Notes under the pieces: model-generated
Told to the model about the DNA's origin: nothing
Database searches by the model: none
Seen by the model: only the letters and a program-made list of their open reading frames with translations
Program-made: the position numbers and the translations under genes
From: Rebecca billardiae RCC1528
Lineage: Eukaryota > Protista > Haptophyta
Assembly (NCBI GenBank): GCA_965240325.2
Contig: OZ251242.1
Location: 1,116,001 to 1,180,000, forward strand
DNA length: 64,000 nucleotides
Direction of reading: 5' to 3'
Part shown: in pieces, positions 15,407 through 62,311 of the stretch
How positions within the stretch are numbered: the first letter of the stretch is position 1
Layout: each line of letters begins with the position of its first letter

Positions 15407-16006
15407 CGCCGATCGAGGCGCTGGGCGGCGTGCGGGGCGGCGAGACGCGCGCGGGAGAGCGGCCGTGCTGCTGCCGTCGATCCGGCGCCGATCTTCGCGC
15501 GCAGAGCGACGAGCAATTTCGGGGCTCAGGCGGTCATCACAGACAGAGGGAATCCACGACGTACGACACTCTATCCGCTGGCACTCTACAGGCACCCTTG
15601 CGCAGTACTCTCAATCTCATCGACTTCTGCGGCTTCGCAGTCACTAGTCAGCAGCCAGCACGTACGGCAGTGCCTGCGCACGCCCATGATATTCAATTCG
15701 ATTTAGTTTCGTTGTGCAGTAAGTGTTATACTGATGGACGACCCGGAAATACCGTCACTGTGACACTGCGGCCCAGCCCTGGCAGCTTCCCGACAAGGGC
15801 CTTGTTCCCGAGGCGGCAGGCCCGCGCACTGCGATGCCGTGGGCGGTCGCACCGGCACCGCGGACGACGGCTGGCGCCTGGCCCTCACGCGGGCCTCACG
15901 CGGTCAAGCGCCGCCGCGGCAACTCCGTCCGGGCTGCCAGCCGGCGCTTACTGGCGGCGACTGCCCCGCGCCATCGCGCACCGAGTCACTCTCGGAGTCA
16001 CGAGTG

Positions 16007-18016: not shown

Positions 18017-19878
18017 TCACAGCATCTGCTCGCCGTTCCGTGGTGACGATGCGCGGCCAACGGCGTCCGCGCGAGCAGCCCAGTACGCGCGGGCGGCTGG
18101 TGATGCGGCCCGGCCGATGCCGCTCGCGCTGCCGCTCGCGGCCTCGATGCGCTCCAGGGCGCTCAGGGGCTGCCGCCGCCTCACCGCGCGCACGGCGGCG
18201 GCCACCCAGCCGAGCGCCGCCACTGTCGCCAGCACGGCGGCCGCGCCAGCTGCGAGCGTCGGCGCCGCCGCCACGCTGCCGCCGTGGCGCGGCGGGTCGG
18301 CCAGCCGAGGCGCGCCTGCGCCCGAGCGCCCGCCCGCCCGCCTCGGCGCTCGCGCCGCGCCGCGCTCGCGCCGCGCGCGCTGCGCGCCGCCCTCGGCCGC
18401 CGCCGCGCTCTGATTGGCCAGCAGCTCGAGCGCCACGTCGCCAAAGGCGTAGACCGCCGAGTGCGAGTGCCACCGGCCGTTCCCGCATAGCCGGAGCGGC
18501 GGCGCGGCGCCCTCCTCCGCCGCGCACACGGGCTCGCACTCCGAGTCGCTCACCTTGCGGAACTTGCCCTCCGGGTGGCGGTGGCCACACGAGCACTCGC
18601 CCGCGTGCAGACCGACGTAGTGCCACGGGCCGGCGCCGTGGCCCGCGCACACGGCCGCGCACGCGGCGCTCGAGCCCTGCGCCGCCTCCGCGTGCAGGCG
18701 CTCAGGATACATGTGGCCGCGGCCGTCGTCGAAACAGCCCACGTACGCGATCGGCGGCGGCGGCGACGGCGGCGGCGCGGGGAGCACGGGCAGGGTGTAC
18801 ACGGCCAGCCGCAGGTGGGTGCGATCATTGTCGCCGCAGCGCCAGACCATCGCGCCGCCCGCGCCGCTCCCGTCCGCGTCGGCGCTGGCGGCGGCCGCGT
18901 CGTCCGCAAGCACCGCTCCATGGAGCTCTGCGTCCACCGCGCCGCCGTCCACGTCAGCCGCGCACGGCTGGCCACACTCGGAGTCCGGCACTTGCTTGTA
19001 CCGGTGCGCGCTGGCGGGCGGCAGCGCGTGCGCGCAGTAGCAGTCGCCCGCCTGGAGGGCCATGTACGGAGCGGTCGCGCAGACGAGCGCGCACGCGGAG
19101 ACGCCGATATTGAAGCCCTGCCGCGTGTCGTATGCGTGCATCGAGTCATCGTAGTAACAGCCCGCCCACTCTGCCTGGGGCAGGGGCGGTGAGGGCGGCA
19201 CGGGCGGCGAGGGCGAGGGCGGCGGGCTGGAGGGAGGCGCGCTCGGCGGCGCGCTCGGTGGGAACGGCGGCGGTGGCGGCGACGGCGACGGGAGCGGCGG
19301 CGGCCGCGGGAGCGGCGGCGGCGGCGGCGGAGGCAAGGGCGGCGGAGGCGACAAGGGCAGCGGAGGCGGCGAGGGGCGCGCGGCGGCGGGCTTTGCCGGG
19401 TGCCGCCTGCCGCCGAGCGCGCTCCACGGCCGAAGCACGGCCGGGAGCGGCGACGCCGGCGGTGGCCGCGGCGGCGGCGGCGGCGCGGGCGAGGGCGAGG
19501 GCGAGGGCAGCCTGGGAGCGGCACGCGGCGCGCGCCCTCCGCCGCTCGGCGCCGCGGGAGACGCCGCGTGCGGAGCTGGGCGCGTGACGGCCCAGGCGCC
19601 GGGCGGCGGCGGCGGCGGCGAGAGCAGCCGTTGCCCGTGGCGCTGCGGCCTGCCCGCCGCCAGCGGCCCGCCCGCGCGCCCGCCCGCCTCCCCTGCCGAC
19701 GGCGAGGGCGGCGCACCGTCAAGAGCGCCAGCTGGCGTGGGCGCGGGCGCGGGCGCCGGCTGCCCGGGCCTGACCCACGGCATCAGAGGCGACTGCACGG
19801 CGACGAGGGCCACTAGGGAGAAGAGAAGGAGGAGGGCGAGGGCCATGCACGCGATCGAGAGCCCGCGCAGGCCGCACG

Positions 19879-19909
<31 letters not shown>

Positions 19910-21958
19910 CTTTGCACGGCGCCGCTTGAGCGGCGGCGGTGTCGCCTCCTCCTCCTCCTCCTCCTCCTCGTCCTCGTCCTGGCTTGGCGTAGTGCCGCTT
20001 GGCGCGCCACGGGCGGGCGTCGAGCGCGCCGGCGTCGGGCCATCCCCCTCCGGTTTGGCCGCCGTGGCGCCGGCCGCCGTCGCGAGGGTCGACGACGACG
20101 ACGGCGGCGGCGAGCGCGCGAGCGCGAGCGCGGCCGCCGCCTCGTCGCGAGCCGCGCGAAGCTCTGCCGAGAGAGCGCTGCGCTCAGCCGCCAGCGCGCG
20201 CCGCTCCGCCTCCATCGACAACCGGAGGGCGGAGAGCGGCTCGGACGCCTCCGCGTCGTCGTGCGCGCACGCGCTCGCCGAGGCCGGCGTGACGCGCGCG
20301 GCGTGCGCTGCGGGCGTGGCGCCACTCCGCTGCGGCGCGGACGCCGCGGACGCCGCGGACGCCGCGGAGCGCTGCAGCTGCTGCCGCTGCTGCTGCTGCT
20401 GCTGCTGCGCCACCGGCGGTGAGATGTTCAGCTCGGGCATCGGTCGGCGCATGTCCGACTCCGGCGGCCACATGTGCGCCGGGCTCTGCGGGTCGCGCGA
20501 GTGCGGGCCGGGCTCCTCACGCCGGCGCCACGGCTCGGGCGTCTTCGGCAAGGGCTCCTCCTCCTCCTCCTGCTCGCCCCCGCCGCCACGGCCGCCCGCT
20601 GCCCAGGCCTCACGCGCCGCGGCCGGGCGGCGCCCACCGGCGTGCTGCGCGCTGGGCGCGTGTGAGGCGTCGTCGTCGCTGCTGGCGTGGTCGCCGTCCG
20701 GCGGCGCCGTCAGCCGCAGCGCGGGCTTCGCCAAGCCGCGCGAGCCGTGCGCCGCGCCCGCTCTCGCATCGCTCTCGCCGCGCCCACGCTCGCGCCGCCG
20801 CGCCGCCGCGCTCGCGCCGCTGCCGTTGCACGGGCCGTTGGAGGAGACTTGCCCGTTGCCGCCGCCATCGCTGCCGCCATCGCTGCTGCTGCTGCCGCAG
20901 CCCACGCTGACGCTCGCGTGCGCTCGCGGCGGCGGCGATGCGAGCCCGGCGCCGGCCGTGGGTGGCGCGACGGGCAGCGCCGCCGGCGGCGGCGCGAGCT
21001 CCACGGCGACAGTGACCGGGGCAGGGGCGACGGGCGGAGGCGGCGGCGGCGGGGAAGGCTCGACGGCGTCCGTTGGCGGGGCAGCGGGCGGCAGCGACGG
21101 CGGCGGCGGCGGCGGCGTGAGCGTGATCTCCGCCGGCGGCGCTCCCAGCGGCGCCACCGCCGGCGCTCGCACGTGCCGGAACGAGCCGCCGCCGCTCCCG
21201 CCGGAGCGCACGGCCGCGGCGACCGCCGAGTCTGCTCGGTGGTGAGCGAGCGCTGCGTCGCGCCTCGCCTGCTCGAGTAGCGCGCTCAGCTGCTTGCTGC
21301 CGGCGCGCTCGCGCTCGAGCTCGGCGACGGCGTCGGCGAGCTCGGCCTTCCAGCCCGCCACCGCTGCCTCCACACGCACCGACGTCCCGCCGCGCTCGCG
21401 CTCGAGCTCGGCCACGGCGTCCGCCAGCTCGGCCTGCCACGAGCTCAGCTCATCGCGAAGCGACGCGGACGCGTTGCGCTCTGCGGCGAGGGCGCGCTCG
21501 AGCTCGGTGGTCATCGAGGTGGCGCGCTCGAGGTCGGCGCGCGGCACGCTCTGCTCGCCGCCGTCGCCCGCGCTCGCGTGCATCCGCGATCGCAGCGACG
21601 CCTCGAGCCGCCGGCCCTCCGACTGCGCGCGCTGGCAGTCGCTCGTGACGGCCTGGAGCCTGGCCGAGGTGACGGCCTCAGAGTCGTCCACCTCGGCGAG
21701 CGTGGCTGCGAGGAGCTGCCGGTTCACCGCGAGCTCGGCGGCGAGCGCGTCGCGCTCACGCTGCACCGCGAGCTTTGCGTTGTTCACCTCGTCGAGCCGA
21801 ATCGCCGTCTGCCGCAGGCGCAGCACGACCGACTTGAAGTCGGAGGGCGCGATGGCGCCAACGGGCATCGCGTGGGCGACCGGGGAGGGCACACGCACGC
21901 TGCTGTCGTCCGAGCTCCAGCCGCCCGTGCTCGGCGGGTACCGCCGCCCGTCGTCCAT
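18017..21958 (-). CDS. Coiled-coil / TM / Pro-rich / two WSC-domain membrane protein
   Basis: N-terminal heptad-rich region, an internal TM, poly-Pro, two WSC-like motifs (WAGCYYD...CALVC...ALQAGDCYC; YVGCFDD...CAAVC...VGLHAGECSCG) and a second TM near the C-terminus. Start MDDGRR is inferred. Confidence 0.75.
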
Positions 21959-22460
21959 GGGTGGCCCCGCGGGATGCGCCCCGCACGCCAGCCACGCACA
22001 GGCCGGAGATGACGACCACCACCACCGAGTTGAGAACACAGCGGCGCCTGGTGAGCAAGCGAGGGTCCGGTGCTGCGCTGGGCAATTCCTCGGACTAATT
22101 CTATGATTTAAAGACACAGGCACGAGGGCGCTGGGGCGCAGCTCGCGCGGAATCTCATCATCAAACGTTTGTGGTCGTGCGGTGAAGCCTGTCGTTACAC
22201 GTGCTGTGCTGCCGTGCACCGGCAGTTTGACGAACGTTGGGAATCCGGCGGCGGTGCCGCGTGGACAAGCGGACTTTCCGCACTGACCGGTGACATCACT
22301 CGCCACTCGCCCTCGGGCGGATGGATCATCCTCATCATTGGTTGCGAATCCCAACTAAGAGGTAGCCTAGTATCCTTAGTGCTGCGAGGTCTCACGCGGC
22401 GCGAATGCCGTGTCGGCAGCGGCCAGTCGGCGCCTCCCTGCCGTGGCGCGTTGCCGCAGC

Positions 22461-24132: not shown

Positions 24133-24433
24133 CGTGCTGGTCGGCCGCACCCGCAACGATTGATTATTGATCAGTAGCGAGCGTGACAATGTTGAGATCC
24201 CCCCACGGCTTCCGGCCAGGTGCCCTTTTTTAAGAGATGCCGCCCACCGTCGCCGGGCTGTCACCGTGCTCACGTGGCCCGTGCGCCTCGATCTCCCGCG
24301 CCCCGAGATGATGATCCACCAGGCAGGCGTGCGCGCAGTTGACGAGGCCGGGCACCTTCACCTTGTGCACCAACTTAGTAGTGTAGCCGCCGAGGACGGC
24401 CCCCGCAAAAGCGGTGGGGGGGCGCGCGGGGGC

Positions 24434-25147
24434 ATGACGGGCTGGTCGGACCCGCTCGGCATCGGCCCCACGACGGCGTACGTCTCGGCCCGCATCGACG
24501 AGTTCTCGACTGCCACCCAAAGCATCTGGCGCGACGCGTGGGAGTCCGTCGCGCGCTCGTCGACGGAGGAGCTGAGCGCGCGCGGGCTGGCAGTCCTCAC
24601 GAACGGCAGCACGGTGGGCGCGGATGGGTCGGTCAAGGAGGGCAGGGGTGGCGCGAGCGGCGCCGAGTCGGATGCCGCGCCGCTCGTCGTCGCCGCCGAC
24701 GGGCCGCCGGCGCCCGGCTCCGCCTCCACGAGCGGGCGCTCGCGCCGATCCGCGCTGAGTCTCGTCTGCCACACGGCTGACGAGGCGCAGCTCGAGCAGG
24801 AGCCGCTGGCAGGCGCGGCCGCGCCCGCGGCGGAGAGCTCGCAGCACCATGGCGCGGCCGGCGCGGCCGCGATGGACGGCCTCGCCTCGCCCAAGCGCAG
24901 CGCGCTCAGCCGGCTGCGCACGCCGCGCCGACACCGGCCCGGGACGGCCGATGCGCCCGCGGAGGCGACGCTGGTGGCCGAGGGCGTGGACGCGCCGCCC
25001 GCGAGCGAGCCCGCCGTCGCGCCGCTCACCGCGCGGCTGCAGCGGCGGCTGCTCACGCCGCGCCGCGCGCGGCCCGGCCACGGTCGGAGCGCGAGCGCGG
25101 ACGCCGCGGCCGCGGCGAAAACGGCCGAGGCGGCGCGTGCCGCGCTC

Positions 25148-25179
<32 letters not shown>

Positions 25180-25550
25180 CTCGGGCGCGGAGGCGCCGCC
25201 GCCCGCGTCAATCTTCGAGTGGCTGCCTCGGCGCAAGACGCCCGGGCGCTCCCGCGCGCGCACGCCCGTCGCCGCCGCGCCCGCTGCCGCCGAGAGCGGC
25301 AGGGACAGCGCGCTTGCAGGCGCGAGCGGCGCCGAGCCGGCGGCCGCTGCGGCGCCGGCCGCTGCGGACGGCGCCGGCCACTCGCCGTCCATCTTCGAGT
25401 GGCTCCCGCGCCGCTCGAAGACGCCGGGCCGCGCGCGCGCGCGCACGCCCAACGCTGGCGCGCCGGCCGCGGCGGACGACCCCATGGGGAACGGCCCGCT
25501 CGTGCGCGCGCGCAGTGCCACCGCCACTGTGAGCGGGCCAGGCGGCGTTG

Positions 25551-25592
<42 letters not shown>

Positions 25593-27248
25593 AGCAGGCG
25601 GCGGCGGATGCGGCCGAGACGGATGGTGGTGCGCACTCGTCGCTGTTCGAGTGGCTGCCGCACCGGCGCGCGCCGGCGAGCAAGCGCGCCGCGCGCGACT
25701 CGAGCGCGACCGCGGCCACTGCCCCAACGGCGGGCAAGGGCGCCGGCGGGGCGGAGGGCGCAGCCGGCGCGGCCGGCACTGCGGGCGCAGAGGCGGAGGC
25801 GGGCGGCGGCGGCGGCGGCGCGGCTGACTTGGCCGCCTCGGTGTCAGACGCGGAGTCCTCCGCGCACTCGTCGATCTTCGAGTGGCTGCCCCGGCGCAGC
25901 AAGACGCCGGCGCGCGCGCGGCCGCGCTCGCCAACAAAGCCGGCCGATCACGCCGCGAGCAGTGGCACGGATGGAGCCAGCCAGGCGGCGGAGGGCGGCG
26001 CCGAGGGCGGCGCCGCGGCCGCGCTGGGCGCGGCCGCGGGCACGCCCGCGCCGCCGCCGCCGCCCCGGCGGCGGCGGCGCAAGGCGGAGCAGCCGCCCTC
26101 GGTGGAGCAGCCCTCGGCCAGCGCCGGTGCGGCAGCGCTCGAGCAGCAGGGCGGAGCGGATGCGGGCGTGGTGCAGCCGGTGCCTGCTACAGCGTCAGCC
26201 GGCGGCGGCGCGGCGGAGGGCGGCGGCGGCGGCGGCGCGGGTGGCGGCGCGGGCGGCGCGGCGCAGGGCGAGGGCCTCATGGCGCGGATGCGGATTCGCC
26301 GACGAGACGCGCCGTCGGCGCCCAGCACGGCGTTCGACTTGAGCGTGGGCACGATCCCGGAGTCGGCACACGCCGACATGCCGGCTGGCGGCAGCGCGGG
26401 CGGCGCGGGCGGCGGGGGCGCCGCCGGCGGCGTGGCCGGCGCGGACGGCACGGATGGCGGTGGCGGCGGCGGCGACGCGGGCTCGTCCGCGCCGTCCGCC
26501 GCCGGCGACACGCCGCGCGGCCGGCGGTATGGGCTGAGCCTGCTGTCGGGCCGGAGGCACCGCAGCGCCGACGGCGACGACGAGCGTTCCACCACCAACA
26601 CCGCAGGCTCGGTCTCGGAGTCCGGCGCGACGCTGGCTGGCGGCGCGCACGGCGGCGCGGCCGACGCGGCCGCGGACGTTGGCGGCGACCCGGCGGCCAG
26701 CGGGCACGCCGACGGCTCGAGCGCGGCGGCGCCCGTGTGCGACAAGTGCGACGGCGCGCACGACACGCACAAGTGCCCGCACTACCCCAAGGAGCGCGAC
26801 GACCACCCGGACGCCAGAACGCGCCCGACAAAGGCCGCCCGGGACGCGGCGTCGACAAGCGTCAGCCTGGTCGGAGCCAAGGTGGTGCCGCAGCCGGGCG
26901 ACGGCAACTGCCTCTTCCATGCACTTTCGCACGGGCTGTCCGACGGCTCGACGGCGGTCACGCTGCGGCGCGAGGTGGCGGCGTTCATCGAGAAGAACGC
27001 CGGGCTCGAGATCGCCGCGACGCCGCTCGCGGAGTGGGTGCGCTGGGACGCGGGCACTTCCATCGCGTCCTATGTGCGGCGCATCTCAATGGGTGGCTCA
27101 TGGGGCGGCGGCATCGAGATCGCGGCGGTCGCGGTCATGCGCGGCGTGAACGTGCACGTGTTCGAGGCGACGCGCGACCCGAGCCGGTTCGCGCGCATCG
27201 GCCACTTCCCCGCCACGCGCGACTCCGCCGTCACCGCCGCCGCCGTCA

Positions 27249-27279
<31 letters not shown>

Positions 27280-27421
27280 TCCGGGCGAGGCCCCGAAGGA
27301 CGGCGTGCGCAACGTGCACGTGCTGTACCGCGGCGGCGTGCACTACGACGGCCTCGACGGCGGCACGCTCGTGCAGACGGCCAAGGCGGCGAAGGGCGGC
27401 GGCCATTTGAGCATCAGATGA
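24434..27421 (+). CDS. OTU-domain deubiquitinase-like protease with a long disordered N-terminus and CCHC zinc knuckle
   Basis: [19 protein letters not shown] and [11 protein letters not shown] motifs; [13 protein letters not shown]. Start MTGWSD is inferred. Confidence 0.85.
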
Positions 27422-30703: not shown

Positions 30704-32440
30704 ATGGAGCCCTCGCTGAAGCGCTCGCGGCGCGTGGACGAGGGCGCCGCCGCCGGCGCGTCACCGGTGTTCGGCGCGTCGTGCGCGCTGTGCGGCGATC
30801 GCATCGGTATGCAGCCGTGGGCGCAGCTCGCGTGCGACGACGAGCACGTCGTGCACAACGTGTGCCTCTTCCAGCGCGCGCTTGCGTCCGAGCGCTGCGT
30901 CGTGCGGTGCGGCCGGCCCGGGTGCAAGCGCGTGACGAAGGCGGCGTCGGCGAGGACGCAGTACGACGGCATCCACGAGCTCGCGGCATCGCATCACGTC
31001 GCCGTCGCGGCGTGCACAGGCGGCGCTTCGCACGAGGAGGTGACGGCCGTGCAGCGCGATCCGCCGTGCCACGACGCTGCCACTGTCACGCTGTGCGACC
31101 TGCCGATGGACGTGATCTCGCGCATCCTCGGCTGGATGGCGTGCGCGCAGGATCTGGCCAGCCTGAACGGCACATCGCGCCTCTTCCGCGGCACGCCTGC
31201 CGGCCGCTCGCCGGTGGAGCACGCGCTGCTCAAGCGCGCACGTCAGCGCGGGCATGAGGGCGCGCTGCCACCGCCTCCCTCGTGGCGGGCGGAGCTGTTC
31301 GCGCGCGAGCGCGTGCTCGAGCTTGCGGCTGCGCACGCGTGCGTAGCCGTGATGGGCAGTAGCAATACTCTGGAGGAGATCAAGTTCAGCGCTTTCGTGG
31401 ACGCGTCGGGCGGGCTGCACACGTGCGGTGAGGAGGAGGATCAGACAGGGCTGTGCGCGCCCGCTGCACTGGGCCATCCGAAGCTGCGCGACTCGGCGGT
31501 CCTCGTGCCGACGCGCGTGGCGTCGCTCTCGGCAGTGCGCCTGCGTGCGGTGGCTGCTGGCTATGGTCACCTGCTCGCGCTGAGCGACTGTGGTGCCGTG
31601 TACTCCTGTGGGAACAATAATCTCGGCCAGCTGGGCCTGGACGACGAGGAGACGCGCCGTGTCTTCACCGCGCTGGGCATGAGCAGCATGGGGCTCGTCG
31701 TGGGCATCGCCGCTGGTGCATGCCACAGCCTCGCGCTCACTGCATCGGGCGGTGTGTACAGCTGGGGATTTAACGAGTTCGGCCAGCTCGGCCACGGCGA
31801 CACTGAGGACCGGCTGGAGCCTGTGCGCATCGAGGCGCTGGACGGTGTGCGCGTGGGCGGCATGTCCGCTGGTTACGGGCACACGCTGCTGCTGTCCATG
31901 GACGGTGCCGTGTACTCGTGCGGTGTCGGCAGAGCAGGCCTCCTCGGGCATGGCGACGAGCAAATGCTACTCACGCCACAGCGCGTCGAGTCGCTGGAGG
32001 GCGTGCGCGCCGTGCACGTGAGCGCTGGCGACCAGCACAGCCTGGTGGTGGACGCCACGGGCGGTGTGCACTCGTTTGGGCGTGGCTGGTTTGGTCGCCT
32101 TGGCCATGGTGCTTACTCCAATGCACTCGTGCCCAGGCGCATCGAGGCGCTGCAGGGCGTGCGCATCGTGCGCGCCAGCGCGGGCTGGATCAGCAGCGCG
32201 GTGATGGGCGCAGAGGGCAGCGTGTACACGTTTGGCGACAACGAACACGGCCAGCTCGGCATCGGCTCAGCTGGCGGGCATCAGCTGCTTCCGGTGCGCG
32301 TGCACGCCCCAGCGCACGGGCAGCTAATGGACTGTGGACTGCTCTCTCGACTACCGCCAGGCGCTTTGGATCACCTCAGACGGCGGCGCGTACTCGTGCG
32401 GCAGGCAGTCGGCCGCGCTCGGCCATGGCGTGAGCTCTGA
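30704..32440 (+). CDS. RING/F-box/RCC1 array copy 1, frameshifted near the C-terminus (possible pseudogene)
   Basis: Same architecture as the other copies; a 7-bp duplication TGGACTG (32328-32341) shifts the frame in the last RCC1 blade. Confidence 0.85.
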   Translation: MEPSLKRSRRVDEGAAAGASPVFGASCALCGDRIGMQPWAQLACDDEHVVHNVCLFQRALASERCVVRCGRPGCKRVTKAASARTQYDGIHELAASHHVAVAACTGGASHEEVTAVQRDPPCHDAATVTLCDLPMDVISRILGWMACAQDLASLNGTSRLFRGTPAGRSPVEHALLKRARQRGHEGALPPPPSWRAELFARERVLELAAAHACVAVMGSSNTLEEIKFSAFVDASGGLHTCGEEEDQTGLCAPAALGHPKLRDSAVLVPTRVASLSAVRLRAVAAGYGHLLALSDCGAVYSCGNNNLGQLGLDDEETRRVFTALGMSSMGLVVGIAAGACHSLALTASGGVYSWGFNEFGQLGHGDTEDRLEPVRIEALDGVRVGGMSAGYGHTLLLSMDGAVYSCGVGRAGLLGHGDEQMLLTPQRVESLEGVRAVHVSAGDQHSLVVDATGGVHSFGRGWFGRLGHGAYSNALVPRRIEALQGVRIVRASAGWISSAVMGAEGSVYTFGDNEHGQLGIGSAGGHQLLPVRVHAPAHGQLMDCGLLSRLPPGALDHLRRRRVLVRQAVGRARPWREL

Positions 32441-32858
32441 CGTCGAGATGGACGACCTCGTCTCTCCTGCGCGCATTGCGCAGCTGCCACCGCTGCTCGT
32501 GCTGCGTAAGTAAGGGTGCGTAGCACCCGGCCGCGATGGGCGCGGCGGGCAGTCGCATCTGCCAGCCAGCGGCCGCTTGCAGCCCCGGGACTGAGTTGCA
32601 GGCGGCGATTGGCTGCATGCAGCTCCTTAACGACAGCAGTCGGTAGCCGCTGGCGGCGGTGCCGCTGCTGCCGCCCCGGGCAGTGCGGGCCGCCGGCTGC
32701 CTCAGCGGGCCAGTGGGGAGTGTGACGAGAATTGCACATCCAATAATGTACGTACCATTTTTGATCCGCGTTTTCTACACCCAACAAGCAGCCAACGGTC
32801 ATCATGCGGTCCGAGCGAGCGGCTGAAGAGATCGTCGACGGCGCCTTGGCTGCGCGGG

Positions 32859-34667
32859 ATGGAGCCTCCGCTCATGAAGCGCTCGCGGCGCGTGGACGAG
32901 GGCACCGCCGGCGCGTCGCCCGTGTTCGGCGCGTCGTGCGCGCTGTGCGGCGATCGCATCGGTGAGCAGCCGTGGGCGCAGCTCGCGTGCGACGACGAGC
33001 ACGTCGTGCACAACGTGTGCCTCTTCCAGCGCGCGCTCGCGTCCGAGCGTTGCGCCGTGCGGTGCGGACGGCCCGGGTGCAAGCGCGTGACGAAGGCGGC
33101 GTCGGCGAGGACGCAGTACGACGGCATCCACGAGCTCGCGGCATCGCATCACGTCGCCGTCGCGGCGTGCACAGGCGGCGCTTCGCACGATGAGGTGACG
33201 GCCGTGCAGCGCGATCCGCCGTGCCACGACGCTGCCACTGTCACGCTGTGCGACCTGCCGATGGACGTGATCTCGCGCATCCTCGGCTGGATGGCGTGCG
33301 CGCAGGATCTGGCCAGCCTGAACGGCACATCGCGCCTCTTCCGCGGCACGCCTGCCGGCCGCTCGCCGGTGGAGCACGCGCTGCTCAAGCGCGCACGTCA
33401 GCGCGGGCATGAGGGCGCGCTGCCACCGCCTCCCTCGTGGCGGGCGGAGCTGTTCGCGCGCGAGCGCGTGCTCGAGCTTGCGGCTGCGCACGCGTGCGTG
33501 GCCGTGATGAGCAGTAGCGCGGGCAACAAGCTGATGATGTTCAGCGCGTTCGTGGACGCGTCGGGCGGGCTGCACACCTGCGGCGAGGAGTCTGGTGAGA
33601 CAGGGCTGTGCGCGCCCGCTGCGCTGGGCCATCCGGAGCTGCGCGACTCAGCCGTTCTCGTGCCGACGCGCGTGGCATCGCTCTCGGCAGTGCGCGTGCG
33701 TGCGGTGGCCGCTGGCAACGGACACCTGCTCGCGTTGAGCAACTGTGGTGCCGTGTACTCCTGTGGGAACAATGATTTAGGCCAGCTGGGCCTGGGCGAC
33801 AAGGAGACGCGCCGTGTCTTCACCGCGCTGGGCATGAGCAGCATGGGGCTCGTCGTGGGCATCGCAGCTGCTGCACACCACAGCCTCGCGCTTACCGCAG
33901 CGGGCGGTGTGTACAGCTGGGGATGGAACGAGGACGGCCAGCTCGGTCACGGCGACACTGAGGACCGGCTGGAGCCTGTGCGCATCGAGGCGCTGGACGG
34001 TGTGCGCGTGGGCGGCATGTCCGCGGGCTGCGAGCACACGCTGCTGCTGTCGACGAGCGGCGCCGTGTACTCGTGCGGTGTCGGCGACGCAGGCCGCACC
34101 GGGCATGGCGACCAGCACCCTCTGCACACACCTCAGCGCGTCGAGGCGCTGGAGGGCGTGCGCGCCGTGCACGTGAGCGCGGGCGACACTCACAGCCTGG
34201 TGGTGGATGCCACTGGCGGTGTGCACTCGTTTGGGTCTCACTCGTTTGGCGGCCTTGGCCATGGTGACGACTCCGACGCACTCGTGCCCAGGCGCATCAA
34301 GGCGCTGCACGGCGTGCGCATCGTGCGCGCCTGCGCAGGCTGTTTCAGCAGCGCGGTGATGGGCGCAGAGGGCAGCGTGTACACGTTTGGCGACAACGAC
34401 TACGGCCAGCTCGGCATCGGTTCAGCTGGTGCGGATCAGCTGCTTCCGGTGCGCGTGCACGCCCCAGCGCATGGCCAGCTGGTGGACTGCTTTCTCGAGT
34501 ACTGCCAGGCGCTCTGGATCACGTCAGACGGCGGCGCGTACTCGTGTGGCAGGCAGAGGGCCGCGCTCGGCCATGGCGTGAGCTCTGACGACGTGATGGA
34601 CGACCTCGTCTCTCCTGCGCGCATTGCGCAGCTGCCACCGCTGCTCGTGCTGCGCAAGGGTGCGTAG
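32859..34667 (+). CDS. RING/F-box/RCC1 array copy 2
   Basis: Intact 602-aa ORF with RING-like, F-box and RCC1 motifs. Confidence 0.92.
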   Translation: MEPPLMKRSRRVDEGTAGASPVFGASCALCGDRIGEQPWAQLACDDEHVVHNVCLFQRALASERCAVRCGRPGCKRVTKAASARTQYDGIHELAASHHVAVAACTGGASHDEVTAVQRDPPCHDAATVTLCDLPMDVISRILGWMACAQDLASLNGTSRLFRGTPAGRSPVEHALLKRARQRGHEGALPPPPSWRAELFARERVLELAAAHACVAVMSSSAGNKLMMFSAFVDASGGLHTCGEESGETGLCAPAALGHPELRDSAVLVPTRVASLSAVRVRAVAAGNGHLLALSNCGAVYSCGNNDLGQLGLGDKETRRVFTALGMSSMGLVVGIAAAAHHSLALTAAGGVYSWGWNEDGQLGHGDTEDRLEPVRIEALDGVRVGGMSAGCEHTLLLSTSGAVYSCGVGDAGRTGHGDQHPLHTPQRVEALEGVRAVHVSAGDTHSLVVDATGGVHSFGSHSFGGLGHGDDSDALVPRRIKALHGVRIVRACAGCFSSAVMGAEGSVYTFGDNDYGQLGIGSAGADQLLPVRVHAPAHGQLVDCFLEYCQALWITSDGGAYSCGRQRAALGHGVSSDDVMDDLVSPARIAQLPPLLVLRKGA

Positions 34668-35068
34668 CACCCGGTGGCCAGTGCGCGATGGGCGTGGGGC
34701 AGTCGCATCTGCCAGCCAGCGCGGCCCGCTTGCAGCCCCGGGACGGAGTTGCAGGCGGCGCTAGGCTGCATGCAGCTCCTTAACAACAGCGGTCGGTAGC
34801 CGCGTTGGCGGCGGTGCCGCTGCTACCGCCCGGGCAGTGCGGGCCGCCGGCTGCCTCAGCGGGCCAGTGGGTTCGAGTGCTGGGACGCGGTCTCGCCGTC
34901 GGGTCCAGCAGTAGTCGTGACGAGAATTGCACATCCAATGTCGTGTCGTACCATTTTAATCCGCCGTTTTCTGCGCAGCAGGCAGCCAACGGTCTCGAGG
35001 TCATCATGCGGTGGCTCCGCTGCCGAGCGCGCTGCTGAAGGATCCTCGACGGCGCCTTGGCTTGCGAG

Positions 35069-36877
35069 ATGGAGCCTCCGCTCATGAAGCGCTCGCGGCG
35101 GGCGGACGATAGCACCGCCGGCGCGCCGCCCGTGTTCGGCGCGTCGTGCGCGCTGTGCGGCGATTGCATCGGTACGCAGCCGTGGGCGCAGCTCGCGTGC
35201 GACGACGAGCACGTCGCGCACAACGTGTGCCTCTTCCAGCGCGCGCTCGCGTCCGAGCGCTGCGTCGTGCGGTGCGGCCGGCCCGGGTGCAAGCGCGTGA
35301 CGAAGGCGGCGTCGGCGAGGACGCAGTACGACGGCATCCACGAGCTCGCGGCATCGCATCACGTCGCCGTCGCGGCGTGCACGGGCGGCGCTTCGCGCGA
35401 GGAGGTGACGGCCGTGCAGCATGATCCGCCGTGCCGTGACGCTGCCACCGTCACGCTGTGCGACCTGCCGACGGACGTGATCTCGCGCATCCTCGGCTGG
35501 ATCGAGTGCGCGCAGGATCTGGCCAGCCTGAACGGCACCTCGCGCCTCTTCCGCGGCACGCCTGCCGGCCGCTCGCCGGTGGAGCATGCGCTGCTCAAGC
35601 GCGCACGTCAGCGCGGGCACGAGGGCGCGCTGCCGACGCCTCCCTCGTGGCGGGCTGAGCTGTTCGCGCGCGAGCGCGTGCTCGAGCTTGCGGCTGCGCA
35701 CGCGTGCGTGGCCGTGATGAGCAGTAGCGCGGGCAACAAGCTGATGATGTTCAGCGCGTTCGTGGACGCGTCGGGCGGGCTGCACACCTGCGGCGAGGAG
35801 TCTGGTGAGACAGGGCTGTGCGCGCCCGCTGCGCTGGGCCATCCAGAGCTGCGCGACTCAGCCGTTCTCGTGCCGACGCGCGTGGCATCGCTCTCGGCAG
35901 TGCGCGTGCGTGCGGTGGCCGCTGGCAACGGACACCTGCTCGCGCTGAGCGACTGTGGTGCCGTGTACTCCTGTGGGAACAATGATCTCGGCCAGCTGGG
36001 CCTGGACGACGAGGAGACGCGCCGTGTCTTCACCGCGCTGGGCATGAGCAGCATGGGGCTCGTCGTGGGCATCGCCGCTGGTGCATGCCACAGCCTCGCG
36101 CTCACTGCATCGGGCGGTGTGTACAGCTGGGGATTTAACGAGTTCGGCCAGCTCGGTCACGGCGACACTGAGGACCGGCTGGAGCCTGTGCGCATCGAGG
36201 CGCTGGACGGTGTGCGCATGGGCGGCATGTCCGCGGGCTGCGAGCACACGCTGCTGCTGTCGACGAGCGGCGCCGTGTACTCGTGCGGTGTCGGCGACGC
36301 AGGCCGCACCGGGCATGGCGACCAGCACCCTCTGCACACACCTCAGCGCGTCGAGGCGCTGGAGGGCGTGCGCGCCGTGCACGTGAGCGCGGGCGACACT
36401 CACAGCCTGGTGGTGGATGCCACGGGCGGTGTGCACTCGTTTGGGCGTGGCTCGTTTGGCTGCCTTGGCCATGGTGATGACTCCAACGCACTCGTGCCCA
36501 GGCGCATCGAGGCGCTGCACGGCGTGCGCATCGTGCGCGCCTGCGCAGGCTGTTTCAGCAGCGCGGTGATGGGCGCAGAGGGCAGCGTGTACACGTTTGG
36601 CGACAACGAACACGGCCAGCTCGGCATCGGTTCAGCTGGTGCGGATCAGCTGCTTCCGGTGCGCGTGCACGCCCCAGCGCATGGCCAGCTGGTGGACTGC
36701 TTTCTCGAGTACTGCCAGGCGCTCTGGATCACGTCAGACGGCGGCGCGTACTCGTGTGGCAGGCAGAGGGCCGCGCTCGGCCATGGCGTGAGCTCTGACG
36801 ACGTGATGGACGACCTCGTCTCTCCTGCGCGCATTGCGCAGCTGCCACCGCTGCTCGTGCTGCGCAAGGGTGCGTAG
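35069..36877 (+). CDS. RING/F-box/RCC1 array copy 3
   Basis: Intact ORF starting MEPPLMKRSRR. Confidence 0.92.
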   Translation: MEPPLMKRSRRADDSTAGAPPVFGASCALCGDCIGTQPWAQLACDDEHVAHNVCLFQRALASERCVVRCGRPGCKRVTKAASARTQYDGIHELAASHHVAVAACTGGASREEVTAVQHDPPCRDAATVTLCDLPTDVISRILGWIECAQDLASLNGTSRLFRGTPAGRSPVEHALLKRARQRGHEGALPTPPSWRAELFARERVLELAAAHACVAVMSSSAGNKLMMFSAFVDASGGLHTCGEESGETGLCAPAALGHPELRDSAVLVPTRVASLSAVRVRAVAAGNGHLLALSDCGAVYSCGNNDLGQLGLDDEETRRVFTALGMSSMGLVVGIAAGACHSLALTASGGVYSWGFNEFGQLGHGDTEDRLEPVRIEALDGVRMGGMSAGCEHTLLLSTSGAVYSCGVGDAGRTGHGDQHPLHTPQRVEALEGVRAVHVSAGDTHSLVVDATGGVHSFGRGSFGCLGHGDDSNALVPRRIEALHGVRIVRACAGCFSSAVMGAEGSVYTFGDNEHGQLGIGSAGADQLLPVRVHAPAHGQLVDCFLEYCQALWITSDGGAYSCGRQRAALGHGVSSDDVMDDLVSPARIAQLPPLLVLRKGA

Positions 36878-37281
36878 CACCCGGTGGCCAGTGCGCGATG
36901 GGCGTGGGGCAGTCGCATCTGCCAGCCAGCGCGGCCCGCTTGCAGCCCCGGGACGGAGTTGCAGGCGGCGCTAGGCTGCATGCAGCTCCTTAACAACAGC
37001 GGTCGGTTGCCGCGTTGGCGGCGGTGCCGCTGCTACCGCCCGGGCAGTGCGGGCCGCCGGCTGCCTCAGCGGGCCAGTGGGTTCGAGTGCTGGGACGCGG
37101 TCTCGCCGTCGGGTCCAGCAGTAGTCGTGACGAGAATTGCACATCCAATGTCGTGTCGTACCATTTTAATCCGCCGTTTTCTGCGCAGCAGGCAGCCAAC
37201 GGTCTCGAGGTCATCATGCGGTGGCTCCGCTGCCGAGCGAGCGCGCTGCTGAGGATCCTCGACGGCGCCTTGGCTTGCGAG

Positions 37282-39084
37282 ATGGAGCCTCCGCTCATGA
37301 AGCGCTCGCGGCGGGCGGACGATAGCACCGCCGGCGCGCCGCCCGTGTTCGGCGCGTCGTGCGCGCTGTGCGGCGATTGCATCGGTACGCAGCCGTGGGC
37401 GCAGCTCGCGTGCGACGACGAGCACGTCGCGCACAACGTGTGCCTCTTCCAGCGCGCGCTCGCGTCCGAGCGCTGCGTCGTGCGGTGCGGCCGGCCCGGG
37501 TGCAAGCGCGTGACGAAGGCGGCGTCGGCGAGGACGCAGTACGACGGCATCCACGAGCTCGCGGCATCGCAACACGTCGCCGTCGCGGCGTGCACGGGCG
37601 GCGCTTCGCGCGAGGAGGTGACGGCCGTGCAGCATGATCCGCCGTGCCGTGACGCTGCCACCGTCACGCTGTGCGACCTGCCGACGGACGTGATCTCGCG
37701 CATCCTCGGCTGGATCGAGTGCGCGCAGGATCTGGCCAGCCTGAACGGCACCTCGCGCCTCTTCCGCGGCACGCCTGCCGGCCGCTCGCCGGTGGAGCAT
37801 GCGCTGCTCAAGCGCGCACGTCAGCGCGGGCACGAGGGCGCGCTGCCGACGCCTCCCTCGTGGCGGGCGGAGCTGTTCGCGCGCGAGCGCGTGCTCGAGC
37901 TTGCGGCTGCGCACGCGTGCGTGGCCGTGATGGGCAGTGGCGCTGAGGGGATCAAGTTCAGCGCTTTCGTGGACGCGTCGGGCGGGCTGCACACCTGCGG
38001 CGAGGAGTCTGGTGAGACAGGGCTGTGCGCGCCCGCTGCGCTGGGCCATCCAGAGCTGCGCGACTCAGCCGTTCTCGTGCCGACGCGCGTGGCATCGCTC
38101 TCGGCAGTGCGCGTGCGTGCGGTGGCCGCTGGCAACGGACACCTGCTCGCGCTGAGCGACTGTGGTGCCGTGTACTCCTGTGGGAACAATGATCTCGGCC
38201 AGCTGGGCCTGGACGACGAGGAGACGCGCCGTGTCTTCACCGCGCTGGGCATGAGCAGCATGGGGCTCGTCGTGGGCATCGCCGCTGGTGCATGCCACAG
38301 CCTCGCGCTCACTGCATCGGGCGGTGTGTACAGCTGGGGATTTAACGAGTTCGGCCAGCTCGGTCACGGCGACACTGAGGACCGGCTGGAGCCTGTGCGC
38401 ATCGAGGCGCTGGACGGTGTGCGCATGGGCGGCATGTCCGCGGGCTGTGAGCACACGCTGCTGCTGTCGACGAGCGGCGCCGTGTACTCGTGCGGTGTCG
38501 GCGACGCAGGCCGCACCGGGCATGGCGACCAGCACCCTCTGCACACACCTCAGCGCGTCGAGTCGCTGGAGGGTGTGCGCGCCGTGCACGTGAGCGCGGG
38601 CGACACTCACAGCCTGGTGGTGGATGCCACTGGCGGTGTGCACTCGTTTGGGTCTCACTCGTTTGGCGGCCTTGGCCATGGTGACGACTCTGACGCACTC
38701 GTGCCTAGGCGCATCGAGGCGCTGCACGGCGTGCGCATCGTGCGCGCCAGCGCAGGCTGTTTCAGCAGCGCGGTGATGGGCGCAGAGGGCAGCGTGTACA
38801 CGTTTGGCTACAACGAACACGGCCAGCTCGGCATCGGCTCAGCTGGTGCGGATCAGCTGCTTCCGGTGCGCGTGCACGCCCCAGCGCACGGCCAGCTGGT
38901 GGACTGCTTTCTCGAGTGGCGCCAGTCGCTCTGGATCACTGCAGGCGGCGGCGCGTACTCGTGTGGCAGGCAGCCGGCTGCGCTCGGCCATGGCGTGAGC
39001 TCTGACGACGTGATGGACGACCTCGTCTCTCCTGCGCGCATTGCGCAGCTGCCACCGCTGCTCGTGCTGCGTAAGGGTGCGTAG
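37282..39084 (+). CDS. RING/F-box/RCC1 array copy 4
   Basis: Intact ORF starting MEPPLMKRSRR. Confidence 0.92.
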   Translation: MEPPLMKRSRRADDSTAGAPPVFGASCALCGDCIGTQPWAQLACDDEHVAHNVCLFQRALASERCVVRCGRPGCKRVTKAASARTQYDGIHELAASQHVAVAACTGGASREEVTAVQHDPPCRDAATVTLCDLPTDVISRILGWIECAQDLASLNGTSRLFRGTPAGRSPVEHALLKRARQRGHEGALPTPPSWRAELFARERVLELAAAHACVAVMGSGAEGIKFSAFVDASGGLHTCGEESGETGLCAPAALGHPELRDSAVLVPTRVASLSAVRVRAVAAGNGHLLALSDCGAVYSCGNNDLGQLGLDDEETRRVFTALGMSSMGLVVGIAAGACHSLALTASGGVYSWGFNEFGQLGHGDTEDRLEPVRIEALDGVRMGGMSAGCEHTLLLSTSGAVYSCGVGDAGRTGHGDQHPLHTPQRVESLEGVRAVHVSAGDTHSLVVDATGGVHSFGSHSFGGLGHGDDSDALVPRRIEALHGVRIVRASAGCFSSAVMGAEGSVYTFGYNEHGQLGIGSAGADQLLPVRVHAPAHGQLVDCFLEWRQSLWITAGGGAYSCGRQPAALGHGVSSDDVMDDLVSPARIAQLPPLLVLRKGA

Positions 39085-39484
39085 CACCCGGTGGCCGGTG
39101 CGCGATGGGCGTGGGGCAGTCGCATCTGCCAGCCAGCGCGGCCCGCTTGCAGCCCCGGGACGGAGTTGCAGGCGGCGCTAGGCTGCATGCAGCTCCTTAA
39201 CAACAGCGGTCGGTAGCCGCGTTGGCGGCGGTGCCGCTGCTACCGCCCGGGCAGTGCGGGCCGCCGGCTGCCTCAGCGGGCCAGTGGGTTCGAGTGCTGG
39301 GACGCGGTCTCGCCGTCGGGTCCAGCAGTAGTCGTGACGAGAATTGCACATCCAATGTCGTGTCGTACCATTTTAATCCGCCGTTTTCTGCGCAGCAGGC
39401 AGCCAACGGTCTCGAGGTCATCATGCGGTGGCTCCGCTGCCGAGCGCGCTGCTGAAGGATCCTCGACGGCGCCTTGGCTGCGAG

Positions 39485-41290
39485 ATGGAGCCTCCGCTCA
39501 TGAAGCGCTCGCGGCGGGCGGACGATAGCACCGCCGGCGCGCCGCCCGTGTTCGGCGCGTCGTGCGCGCTGTGCGGCGATTGCATCGGTACGCAGCCGTG
39601 GGCGCAGCTCGCGTGCGACGACGAGCACGTCGCGCACAACGTGTGCCTCTTCCAGCGCGCGCTCGCGTCCGAGCGCTGCGTCGTGCGGTGCGGCCGGCCC
39701 GGGTGCAAGCGCGTGACGAAGGCGGCGTCGGCGAGGACGCAGTACGACGGCATCCACGAGCTCGCGGCATCGCATCACGTCGCCGTCGCGGCGTGCACGG
39801 GCGGCGCTTCGCGCGAGGAGGTGACGGCCGTGCAGCATGATCCGCCGTGCCGTGACGCTGCCACCGTCACGCTGTGCGACCTGCCGACGGACGTGATCTC
39901 GCGCATCCTCGGCTGGATGGCGTGCGCGCAGGATCTGGCCAGCCTGAACGGCACCTCGCGCCTCTTCCGCGGCACGCCTGCCGGCCGCTCGCCGGTGGAG
40001 CATGCGCTGCTCAAGCGCGCACGTCAGCGCGGGCATGAGGGTGCGCTGCCACCGCCTCCCTCGTGGCGGGCGGAGCTGTTCGCGCGCGAGCGCGTGCTCG
40101 AGCTTGCGGCTGCGCACGCGTGCGTGGCCGTGATGGGCAGTGGCGCTGAGGGGATCAAGTTCAGCGCTTTCGTGGACGCGTCGGGCGGGCTGCACACGTG
40201 CGGTGAGGAGGAGGATGAGACAGGGCTGTGCGCGCCCGCTGCACTGGGCCATCCGGAGCTGCGCAACTCGGCAGCGGTCCTCGTGCCGACGCGCGTGGCG
40301 TCGCTCTCGGCAGTGCGCGTGCGTGCGGTGGCTGCTGGCTATGGTCACCTGCTCGCGCTGAGCGACTGTGGTGCCGTGTACTCCTGTGGGAACAATGATT
40401 TAGGCCAGCTGGGCCTGGGCCACAAGGAGACTCGCCGCACGTTCACCGCGCTAGGCATGAGCAGCATGGGGCTCGTCGTGGGCATCGCCGCTCGTGCGAA
40501 GCACAGCCTCGCGCTCACTGCAGCGGGCGGTGTGTACAGCTGGGGATGTAACGAGATCGGCCAGCTCGGCCACGGCGACACTGAGCACCGGCTGGAGCCT
40601 GTGCGCATCCAGGCGCTGGACGGTGTGCGCGTGGGCGGCATGTCCGCTGGTTACGGGACCACGCTGCTGCTGTCGACGAGCGGTGCCGTGTACTCGTGCG
40701 GTGACGGCGAAGCAGGCCGCACCGGGCATGGCCACGAGAGCACTCTGCTCACGCCACAGCGCGTCGAGTCGCTGGAGGGCGTGCGCGCCGTGCACGTGAG
40801 CGCTGGCGATGATCAGGGCCTGGTGGTGGATGCTACGGGCGGTGTGCACTCGTTCGGGTCTCACTCGTTTGGCTGCCTTGGCCATGGTGACGAATCTGAC
40901 GCACTCGTGCCCAGGCGCATCGAGGCGCTGCAGGGCGTGCGCATCGTGCGCGCCAGCGCGGGCTGTTTTTGCAGCGCGGTGATGGGCGTGGACGGCAGCG
41001 TGTACACGTTTGGCTCCAACGAACACGGCCAGCTTGGCATCGGCTCAGCTGGTGCGAGTCCGCCGCTTCCGGTGCGCGTGCACGCCCCAGCGCACGGGCA
41101 GCTAATGGACTGCTCTCTCGACTACCGCCAGGCGCTTTGGATCACCTCAGACGGCGGCGCGTACTCGTGCGGCAGGCAGTCGGCCGCGCTCGGCCATGGC
41201 GTGAGCTCTGACGACGGGGTGGACGACCTCGTCTCTCCTGCGCGCATTGCGCAGCTGCCCCCGCTGCTCATGCTGCGCCGGGGTGCGTAG
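39485..41290 (+). CDS. RING/F-box/RCC1 array copy 5
   Basis: Intact ORF starting MEPPLMKRSRR. Confidence 0.92.
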   Translation: MEPPLMKRSRRADDSTAGAPPVFGASCALCGDCIGTQPWAQLACDDEHVAHNVCLFQRALASERCVVRCGRPGCKRVTKAASARTQYDGIHELAASHHVAVAACTGGASREEVTAVQHDPPCRDAATVTLCDLPTDVISRILGWMACAQDLASLNGTSRLFRGTPAGRSPVEHALLKRARQRGHEGALPPPPSWRAELFARERVLELAAAHACVAVMGSGAEGIKFSAFVDASGGLHTCGEEEDETGLCAPAALGHPELRNSAAVLVPTRVASLSAVRVRAVAAGYGHLLALSDCGAVYSCGNNDLGQLGLGHKETRRTFTALGMSSMGLVVGIAARAKHSLALTAAGGVYSWGCNEIGQLGHGDTEHRLEPVRIQALDGVRVGGMSAGYGTTLLLSTSGAVYSCGDGEAGRTGHGHESTLLTPQRVESLEGVRAVHVSAGDDQGLVVDATGGVHSFGSHSFGCLGHGDESDALVPRRIEALQGVRIVRASAGCFCSAVMGVDGSVYTFGSNEHGQLGIGSAGASPPLPVRVHAPAHGQLMDCSLDYRQALWITSDGGAYSCGRQSAALGHGVSSDDGVDDLVSPARIAQLPPLLMLRRGA

Positions 41291-41648
41291 CACCCGGTGC
41301 GTGATGGCTGCGGGGCAGTCGCATCCGCCACCCAGCGCCCGCTCGCAGCCCCGGGACGGAGTTGCAGGCGGCGCTTGGCCGCATGCAGCTCCTTAACAAC
41401 AGCAGTCGGTAGCCGCTGGCGGCGGTGCCGCCGCTGCCGCCCCGGGCAGTGCGGGCCGCCGGCTGCCTCAGCGGGCTGCCAATGCCAATGGTGTGAGTGG
41501 GGAGTGTGACGAGAGTTGCACATCCAATATAATGTACGTATACCATCATCATTTTTGATCCGTTTTCTACACCCAACAAGCAGCCAACGGTCATCATGCG
41601 GTCCGAGCGAGCGGCTGAAGAGATCGTCGACGGCGCGTTGGCTGCGAG

Positions 41649-42131
41649 ATGGAGCCTCCGCTCATGAAGCGCTCGCGGCGGGCGGACGATAGCACCGCCG
41701 GCGCGTCGCCCGTGTTCGCGGTGTTCGGCGCGTCGTGCGCGCTGTGCGGCGATCGCATCGGTGAGCAGCCGTGGGCGCAGCTCGCGTGCGACGACGAGCA
41801 CGTCGTGCACAACGTGTGCCTCTTCCAGCGCGCGCTCGCGTCCGAGCGTTGCCCCGTGCGGTGCGGCCAGCCCGGGTGCAAGCGCGTGACGAAGGCGGCG
41901 TCGGCGAGGACGCAGTACGACGGCATCCACGCGCTCAAGGCATCGCATCACGTCGCCGTCGCGGCGTGCACAGGCGGCGCTTCGCACGAGGAGGTGACGG
42001 CCGTGCAGCGCGATCCGCCGTGCCACGACGCTGCCACCGTCACGCTTTGCGACCTGCCGACGGACGTGATCTCGGCGCGCCGCAATCGCTGGCCACTGTC
42101 AGAGCCGAGTTGCGACGAACGCGCCCACTGA
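41649..42131 (+). pseudogene. Array copy 6, truncated (RING only; breaks inside the F-box at about 42074)
   Basis: Homology to the other copies stops after LPTDVIS; the ORF ends shortly afterwards in unrelated sequence. Confidence 0.85.

Positions 42132-62280: not shown

Positions 62281-62311
<31 letters not shown>

Follow-up and report, generated by a model that had tools for sequence, protein, structure and literature searches.

Large tandem arrays of positively selected F-box genes in plants and nematodes, together with the S-locus F-box (SLF) arrays, combine a conserved F-box with a fast-evolving substrate domain, and these families are read as recognising non-self or changing partners. 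In budding yeast, Saf1 is reportedly an F-box protein with an RCC1-like domain. In mammals, FBXO24 carries an F-box and an RCC1-type propeller and serves as the substrate-binding part of a Skp1-Cullin-F-box (SCF) ubiquitin ligase (PMC10932545). The subject of the present analysis is an array of genes in the haptophyte Rebecca billardiae RCC1528, in which an F-box-like motif is joined to an RCC1 propeller. The array lies in a stretch of 64,000 nucleotides, referred to below as the window, that corresponds to C25:1116001-1180000 (contig C25 is OZ251242.1; the genome comprises 72 Mb in 41 contigs, with approximately 70% G+C). The reading favoured here, to which a rough probability of 0.6 is given, is that these genes encode SCF substrate receptors, which together would form a diversifying repertoire.

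The likeness to FBXO24 and Saf1 lies in the domain order, F-box and then RCC1-type propeller, and is one of architecture. Those proteins are single-copy and have defined cellular substrates, whereas here there are hundreds of intronless tandem paralogues with hypervariable loops and, in the subfamily to which the window copies belong, an extra N-terminal Cys/His module. The plant, nematode and SLF families are alike in forming large tandem F-box arrays with a fast-changing substrate-binding domain, but that domain is of the FBA, LRR, kelch or FTH type and not an RCC1 propeller. UVR8, the plant UV-B photoreceptor, is the nearest solved relative in both fold and sequence. It has neither F-box nor Cys/His module, and its Trp triad is not conserved in the present proteins, which leaves no grounds for supposing that they sense UV-B. 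In HERC1/2 (HECT), RCBTB-type BTB-RCC1 and U-box-RCC1 proteins, an RCC1 propeller likewise does the binding for a ubiquitin ligase, and the protein search returned BTB-RCC1 (P0036, P0056, P0119) and U-box-RCC1 (P0016) proteins; these differ in their ligase module and are neither arrayed nor hypervariable.

The combination of F-box and RCC1 propeller is already known from FBXO24. In the literature searched, there was no description of the present family or of any F-box/RCC1 expansion ('RCC1' in haptophyte papers proved to refer to culture-collection strain numbers and not to the domain), and to our knowledge no such expanded F-box receptor family is known from haptophytes. Little is known of how marine algae recognise viruses or other invaders, although viruses control algal blooms. 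If the favoured reading is correct, the family would be a candidate for innate recognition, by a type of system not so far described in haptophytes or with RCC1 propellers. The analysis adds a model of the complex with Skp1, negative tests of a RING assignment, and the identification of apparent outside relatives as sequences of the same organism.

Organisation and mosaic structure of the array

Seven gene copies were found in the window by tblastn, with copy 3, which also served as the reference for folding and other searches, as the query (Table 1). Four tandem genes and one inverted gene are intact, one copy is frameshifted and one is a 5' remnant. Copies 1 to 6 are arranged head-to-tail with a period of 2.15-2.21 kb, each unit starting at the first coordinate given for it in Table 1. 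The direct repeats of the array are 89-100% identical, which is far beyond chance. Every copy is intronless, as are all of the F-box/RCC1 genes examined. The inverted paralogue, copy 0, is placed 13 kb upstream of the array.

In copy 1, the 7-bp sequence TGGACTG is duplicated in tandem at approximately 32327-32333, which shifts the frame ahead of the last blade of the propeller. The open reading frame (ORF) stops at 32440, with the loss of the last ~55 residues, and homology runs on in another frame to approximately 32510. Copy 1, with its last blade out of frame, is a probable pseudogene. In copy 6, homology stops within the F-box, and this point marks the 3' edge of the array. A tandemly expanded family with seven related copies in the window had been proposed in the original prediction, which was made from the DNA letters of this stretch and a list of its ORFs. 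Both the expansion and the number of copies were borne out, with the qualification that copy 1 is frameshifted and copy 6 is only a remnant.

It is apparent that the copies are mosaic. The identity of a given copy pair varies from 84% to 100% along the unit. Over the first ~450 nt there is no difference between copies 3, 4 and 5, after which copy 5 is 87-93% identical to the other two, the propeller included; copy 3 is closest to copy 1 at unit nt 900-1000 and to copy 2 at unit nt 600-700 and 1125-1250. Synonymous divergence (dS) for a single pair, copies 3 and 5 for example, is sevenfold apart between the N-terminal part (0.024) and the propeller (0.173). This is the pattern that would be expected of gene conversion or unequal crossing-over between paralogues.

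Table 1. Features of the array, domains of the reference copy, the Skp1 gene and other genes of the window. Positions are those of the window unless a contig is named; domain limits in amino acids (aa) refer to copy 3.
Feature	Position	Strand	Basis or remark
Copy 0, intact inverted paralogue, ~596-599 aa, 84% aa identity to copy 3	16007-17806	-	tblastn, ORF
Copy 1, full-length unit, frameshifted	30704-32510	+	tblastn, ORF
Copy 2, intact, 602 aa	32859-34667	+	ORF, Pfam, tblastn
Copy 3, intact, 602 aa	35069-36877	+	ORF, Pfam, tblastn
Copy 4, intact, 600 aa	37282-39084	+	ORF, Pfam, tblastn
Copy 5, intact, 601 aa	39485-41290	+	ORF, Pfam, tblastn
Copy 6, 5' remnant, first ~140 codons (Cys/His module, linker, first half of F-box)	41649-~42074	+	tblastn
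Copy 3, Cys/His (C3H2C3-type) module, aa 27-74	35147-35290	+	alignment, Pfam, hhalign, models
Copy 3, F-box-like motif, aa ~127-170	35447-35578	+	Pfam, Skp1 model
Copy 3, conserved helical linker RSPVEHAL...ERVLE, aa 171-215	35579-35713	+	alignment, AlphaFold
Copy 3, seven-bladed RCC1-like propeller, aa 216-595	35714-36853	+	Pfam, PDB profile, AlphaFold, Foldseek
Skp1 gene, locus L031	C5:832727-835870		short GT-AG introns of ~120 nt; start codon in a further upstream exon
GH1 beta-glucosidase gene	13361-15592	-	Pfam
Long ORF with WSC domain	18017-22351	-	Pfam
Long ORF with OTU-like cysteine protease (deubiquitinase-type) domain	24167-27418	+	Pfam, E 3e-8
Lys/Glu-rich ORF, 224 aa	42263-42937	-	directly 3' of the array, convergent
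Long ORF with Piezo anchor domain	61194-63980	-	Pfam

The RCC1 propeller

The presence of an RCC1 propeller in these proteins is certain. Matches to the Pfam WD40_RLD/RCC1 families had E values of 1e-64 to 1e-70. In all five full tandem copies, PF25390 scored 218-238 bits (cut-off 150), and PF00415 scored 198-219 bits (cut-off 21.7) over at least six stretches. A family profile searched against PDB sequences matched UVR8 with an E value of 7e-131. In the AlphaFold model of copy 3, the predicted local distance difference test (pLDDT) score exceeds 90 across residues ~260-560, and a Foldseek search placed UVR8 first (E 1e-36; template-modelling score 0.93 by target), followed by the RCC1-like domains of HERC2. 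The RCC1 repeats noticed originally are, with these scores and this fold model, well established. The helical linker that precedes the propeller is also present in F-box-only relatives.

The F-box and Skp1

The F-box-like family PF12937 scored 14-20 bits in the window copies and did not reach its cut-off of 24.3. When paralogues were scanned, a Pfam F-box-like match was obtained in all 28, below or near the cut-off (best E 1.2e-5), and the alignment showed that the F-box core LP..[DE][VL][IL]..[IL]L is kept across them. The genome contains a single Skp1, with a score of 101 bits. Cullin was matched at four sites, spread over three contigs, and there is one clear Rbx1 (74.5 bits).

A complex was modelled from residues 120-215 of copy 3 and the C-terminal exon of Skp1 alone (L031:1285-1653), the exons of the latter being left unjoined. 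The interface score (ipSAE) was 0.66 (0.69, 0.66 and 0.66 in individual runs), whereas the highest of three controls scored 0.00; of 78 solved complexes 51 attain the mark, and of 108 mismatched pairs 2 do so. Agreement of contacts between runs was at least 90% and the partner pLDDT at least 77. The modelled interface places residues 127-162 of copy 3 against the C-terminal helices of Skp1, as in known Skp1/F-box complexes. The model does not, of course, demonstrate binding; it indicates a likeness to Skp1/F-box complexes, and it is on this model that Skp1 binding is proposed. The F-box of the original prediction is supported by a weak but consistent match in every paralogue scanned and by predicted docking in the Skp1 model that had been suggested as a check, and falls short of the Pfam cut-off in the window copies.

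These data also bear on the possibility that no ubiquitin system is involved, the F-box-like helix being a relic or Skp1-independent and the propeller proteins serving to bind or scaffold. RCC1 propellers have many non-ligase roles (UVR8, RCC1, RPGR), and an F-box that is below threshold in the window copies and folds with low confidence would be in keeping with such a role. The retention of the match and of its core through all 28 paralogues argues otherwise, as does a Skp1 model that passes while its controls do not, and the idea is regarded as improbable.

Hypervariable loops and selection

Forty-six full-length paralogues, which form two clades, were compared, each clade being analysed on its own. 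In both, every blade has its peaks of entropy at identical spots, namely the pair of residues that follows AG and a group of three or four that lies between GxLG and the G at the end of the strand. There is almost no variation in the Cys/His module, the F-box or the scaffold. Loop signatures composed of 25 sites were almost all different, with 45 distinct signatures in the 46 genes. When aligned to UVR8, the hypervariable pair after AG falls on the W and R of its GWRHT motifs, residues that lie within the UVR8 dimer interface (PMC4501546). Given this alignment to interface residues, the variable positions should lie together on a single face of the propeller. Receptors of variable specificity had been part of the original prediction, and the variation does appear to be concentrated, at the same loop positions of each blade, on a putative ligand face.

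Classes of sites were set from one clade, and the other clade was used for the measurements. The ratio of nonsynonymous to synonymous divergence (dN/dS) in these cross-clade measurements was 1.0-1.5 at hypervariable sites, versus 0.28-0.43 at scaffold sites, and reached 1.54 (confidence interval 1.03-2.45) at the 29 most variable sites. Relative to the dS of the scaffold codons interleaved with them, whose genealogy is the same, hypervariable sites had a dN that was 1.85-2.7 times as high, with confidence intervals above 1. For the six full copies of the window alone, dN/dS was 0.94 at hypervariable and 0.29 at scaffold sites. The composition of the loops is distinctive as well: 26% of residues are aromatic and 30% charged, versus 9-10% and 15-18% elsewhere, with enrichment in Trp, Tyr, Phe, Asp and Glu and a paucity of Ala, Gly and Pro. 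This composition speaks against GC-driven drift.

A decaying, selfishly amplified family, in which loop variability reflects relaxed constraint, would also show a hypervariable dN/dS of about 1 against its own dS, and would be expected to contain damaged members such as the frameshifted copy and the remnant in the window. Decay of this kind is nevertheless considered very improbable: the scaffold dN/dS is low, long open frames are present in nearly all of the 46 genes, the loop dN exceeds the dS of the interleaved codons, and the loops are rich in aromatic and acidic residues and not in the Ala, Gly and Pro that drift would be expected to supply.

Size of the family and apparent outside relatives

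The Cys/His module is present in 61 copies genome-wide (62 candidates, all of which were scored). Contig C25 carries 33 of these in several arrays, and the remainder are found on ten other contigs. For the part comprising F-box, linker and propeller, a first look gave 533-548 candidates, the majority without the module; all of the 150 that were scored were significant. The sequence data indicate that the genome holds at least about 500 F-box/RCC1 candidates.

An exhaustive phmmer search with the N-terminal 215 residues against 1.84 billion representative proteins gave eight matches; no RING protein was among them, and the module was covered by a single fragment (P0122). That fragment proved to be DNA of this organism (C13, 100% identity), as did P0001, the best full-length 'outside' match (C17, 99% identity). 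Because both derive from read sets of the same organism, neither is an independent relative. Scans of IMG/VR and JGI metagenomes yielded nothing matching. With P0122 so explained and these scans blank, no relative of the module was detected outside the organism. Environmental data do contain F-box/RCC1 proteins that share the linker, P0004 (47% identity) being an example. An origin in giant viruses, raised by the viral affiliation of some of the nearest language-model clusters, was rejected, as there was no viral match and the flanking genes are cellular.

A solitary ORF with the Cys/His module was observed at C13:237657-239956 (L052, ORF 1405-1809). It has lost the Cys at position 65 and stops just past an F-box-like LTLEQLPP start, without a propeller, and in this respect resembles the copy 6 remnant. 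It is to this ORF that the sole 'outside' match to the module, noted above as DNA of this organism, corresponds.

A proposed repertoire of diversifying substrate receptors

The favoured reading is that the genes would encode substrate receptors of SCF-type ubiquitin ligases. The F-box (residues ~127-165) would dock on the single Skp1 of the cell, and the conserved helical linker would hold the seven-bladed propeller. The face of the propeller that UVR8 uses for dimerisation and partner binding is predicted to carry two to five hypervariable residues per blade, and it is these residues that would bind the target. Germline diversity would arise by tandem duplication and by exchange of segments between paralogues, whether by unequal crossing-over or by gene conversion, and selection that favours changed loop positions would add to it. 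The window copies are part of the 61-member subfamily, which would have gained its nearly invariant N-terminal Cys/His module, of zinc-binding type, as an addition. A constant framework, a hypervariable binding face and the exchange of cassettes between copies would together amount to an antibody-like pattern. What the data show is the structure and domain content of the copies, their mosaicism, their periodic hypervariability and a genome that has Skp1, Cullin and Rbx1; Skp1 binding, ubiquitination, the binding of zinc and the nature of the targets are inferred. The variable substrate receptors of the original prediction are supported in their expansion, their F-box/RCC1 fusion, their ligand-face variation and their modelled docking on Skp1, and not in the RING and the nuclear localisation signal (NLS), which are considered in the following section. 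The further proposal that they mark viral or other foreign proteins for degradation is conjectural.

Several points weigh against the proposed receptor function. The F-box is under the Pfam cut-off in the window copies, and its pLDDT in the monomer model is only 47-64. The score of the Skp1 model may stem from memorised Skp1/F-box structures, and a single Skp1 exon was used. The hypervariable dN/dS is approximately 1 when set against the dS of the same codons, in an analysis where the Nei-Gojobori method is rough at a third-position G+C content of 83%, pairs are non-independent and recombination blurs genealogies. The evidence for the family is genomic, and its targets are hypothetical. Finally, a frameshift is present in one of six full-length copies and the remaining copy is a remnant, so part of the turnover is simply decay.

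The same SCF mechanism could be directed at fast-changing partners of the organism's own, in mating, in self/non-self discrimination like that of the plant S-locus F-box arrays, or in the control of selfish elements. The anatomical evidence would be the same, the variation data are silent on what is bound, and the arrays sit among ordinary cellular genes. Several hundred members on many contigs are, however, more than known mating systems contain, and no link to a recognisable mating locus came to light, although no search was aimed at one. Own partners are unlikely to be the targets.

The N-terminal Cys/His module

The pattern of the module is C-x2-C-x13-C-x3-H-x2-H-x2-C followed by C-x3-C-x4-C. 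Among 28 paralogues down to 50% identity, five of the nine Cys or His residues never vary and the other four are almost invariant. The Cys/His pattern noticed originally is, in other words, real, and it suggests that the module binds zinc. The assignment of this pattern to a RING domain has fared less well, as tests that go further than the spacing of the ligands gave weak or negative results. The order is that of a RING-H2 domain (Pfam zf-RING_2), C3H2C3, and ligands 1-6 match the spacing used as the test (C-x2-C-x(9-39)-C-x(1-3)-H-x(2-3)-H-x2-C-x(4-48)-C-x2-C). The last pair, for which there are three candidate Cys (positions 65, 69 and 74), is C-x3-C or C-x4-C and not C-x2-C.

Profile and fold comparisons gave no significant match. 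Pfam zf-RING_2 matched just 2 of the 28 members, with E values of 0.03-0.2, far under the cut-off. Alignment by hhalign to the 27 RING-H2 domains of the genome gave a probability of 18.5% (P 0.0013), with ligands 1-7 in register. Protein-language-model features of residues 18-95 were closest to RING clusters (0.86-0.88), a result that is regarded only as a lead. The pLDDT of the module was below 50 in the full-length AlphaFold model and 62 when the module was folded alone, values at which the models do not show a cross-brace fold with confidence; the alignment of the module is too invariant to guide folding. Foldseek found nothing in PDB (E of at least 3.8), and a profile of the N-terminal 215 residues gave only a chance match, NikO (E 0.14), among PDB sequences.

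The E2 surface was examined at the hydrophobic position that follows ligand 1, at the Trp of the helix and at the Pro next to ligand 7. The Trp and the Pro are part of the usual E2-binding surface of RING domains, and they are invariant in the 27 RING-H2 domains of the genome. In the module, the Trp is replaced by Arg, and the Pro by Val, Ala or Cys.

The N-terminus is accordingly described here as a conserved module of zinc-finger type, RING-H2-like in its spacing. That it has a divergent RING fold is possible, at somewhat less than even odds; that it actively recruits an E2 is unlikely. A fixed docking or regulatory module is more likely than an E2-recruiting head. The same evidence decides how much weight can be given to a two-headed ligase, in which the N-terminal RING would itself recruit an E2, the protein being both RING E3 and SCF receptor or the RING taking the place of Rbx1. 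Ligands 1-7 do fit the order and spacing of RING-H2 in the hhalign register, the language-model features and the weak Pfam match lean the same way, and the module is under strong conservation. Set against these are the low hhalign probability, the two Pfam matches in 28 members, the poor pLDDT without a Foldseek match, the altered spacing of the last pair and the replaced Trp and Pro; a second head of this kind is unlikely. Were the module a working RING, the ligase would be of unusual design, an F-box protein that itself carries a head for recruiting an E2. A bolder form of the proposal, in which a germline antibody-like ubiquitin-ligase repertoire with shuffled loop cassettes is directed at foreign (e.g. 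giant-virus) proteins, and the 61 members carry a divergent RING as a Cullin-independent second head, is rated as distinctly unlikely. With no detectable relative in the 1.84 billion representative proteins, the module is a clean structural target.

The NLS-like basic start (KRSRR) had been put forward as a feature of each full copy. It is not general to the family; it is confined to the C25 clade, and members of the other clade begin with MERTP... and are without a basic cluster.

A bona fide RING-H2 domain (48 bits) was observed at C25:1008547-1008672 (locus L072), approximately 2.3 kb upstream of the family member at C25:1010914. The two share one open frame of 1786 aa.

Neighbouring genes

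The genes that flank the array are ordinary cellular ones, for Piezo, a DEAD helicase, a GH1 protein, an OTU-like protease and a protein with a WSC domain. The Lys/Glu-rich ORF beyond the 3' edge has no Pfam match. The OTU-like protease ORF is situated approximately 3 kb 5' of the array, and this could be a coincidence, or the protease could be functionally tied to a neighbouring ubiquitin system. Among named sequences, the closest relatives of the GH1 gene come from haptophytes, Prymnesium parvum (57% identity) and Diacronema lutheri (55%). The GH1 protein also has a 100% identical match in the Logan assembly ERR14847148, and because of this identity ERR14847148 is taken to be a run of this organism.

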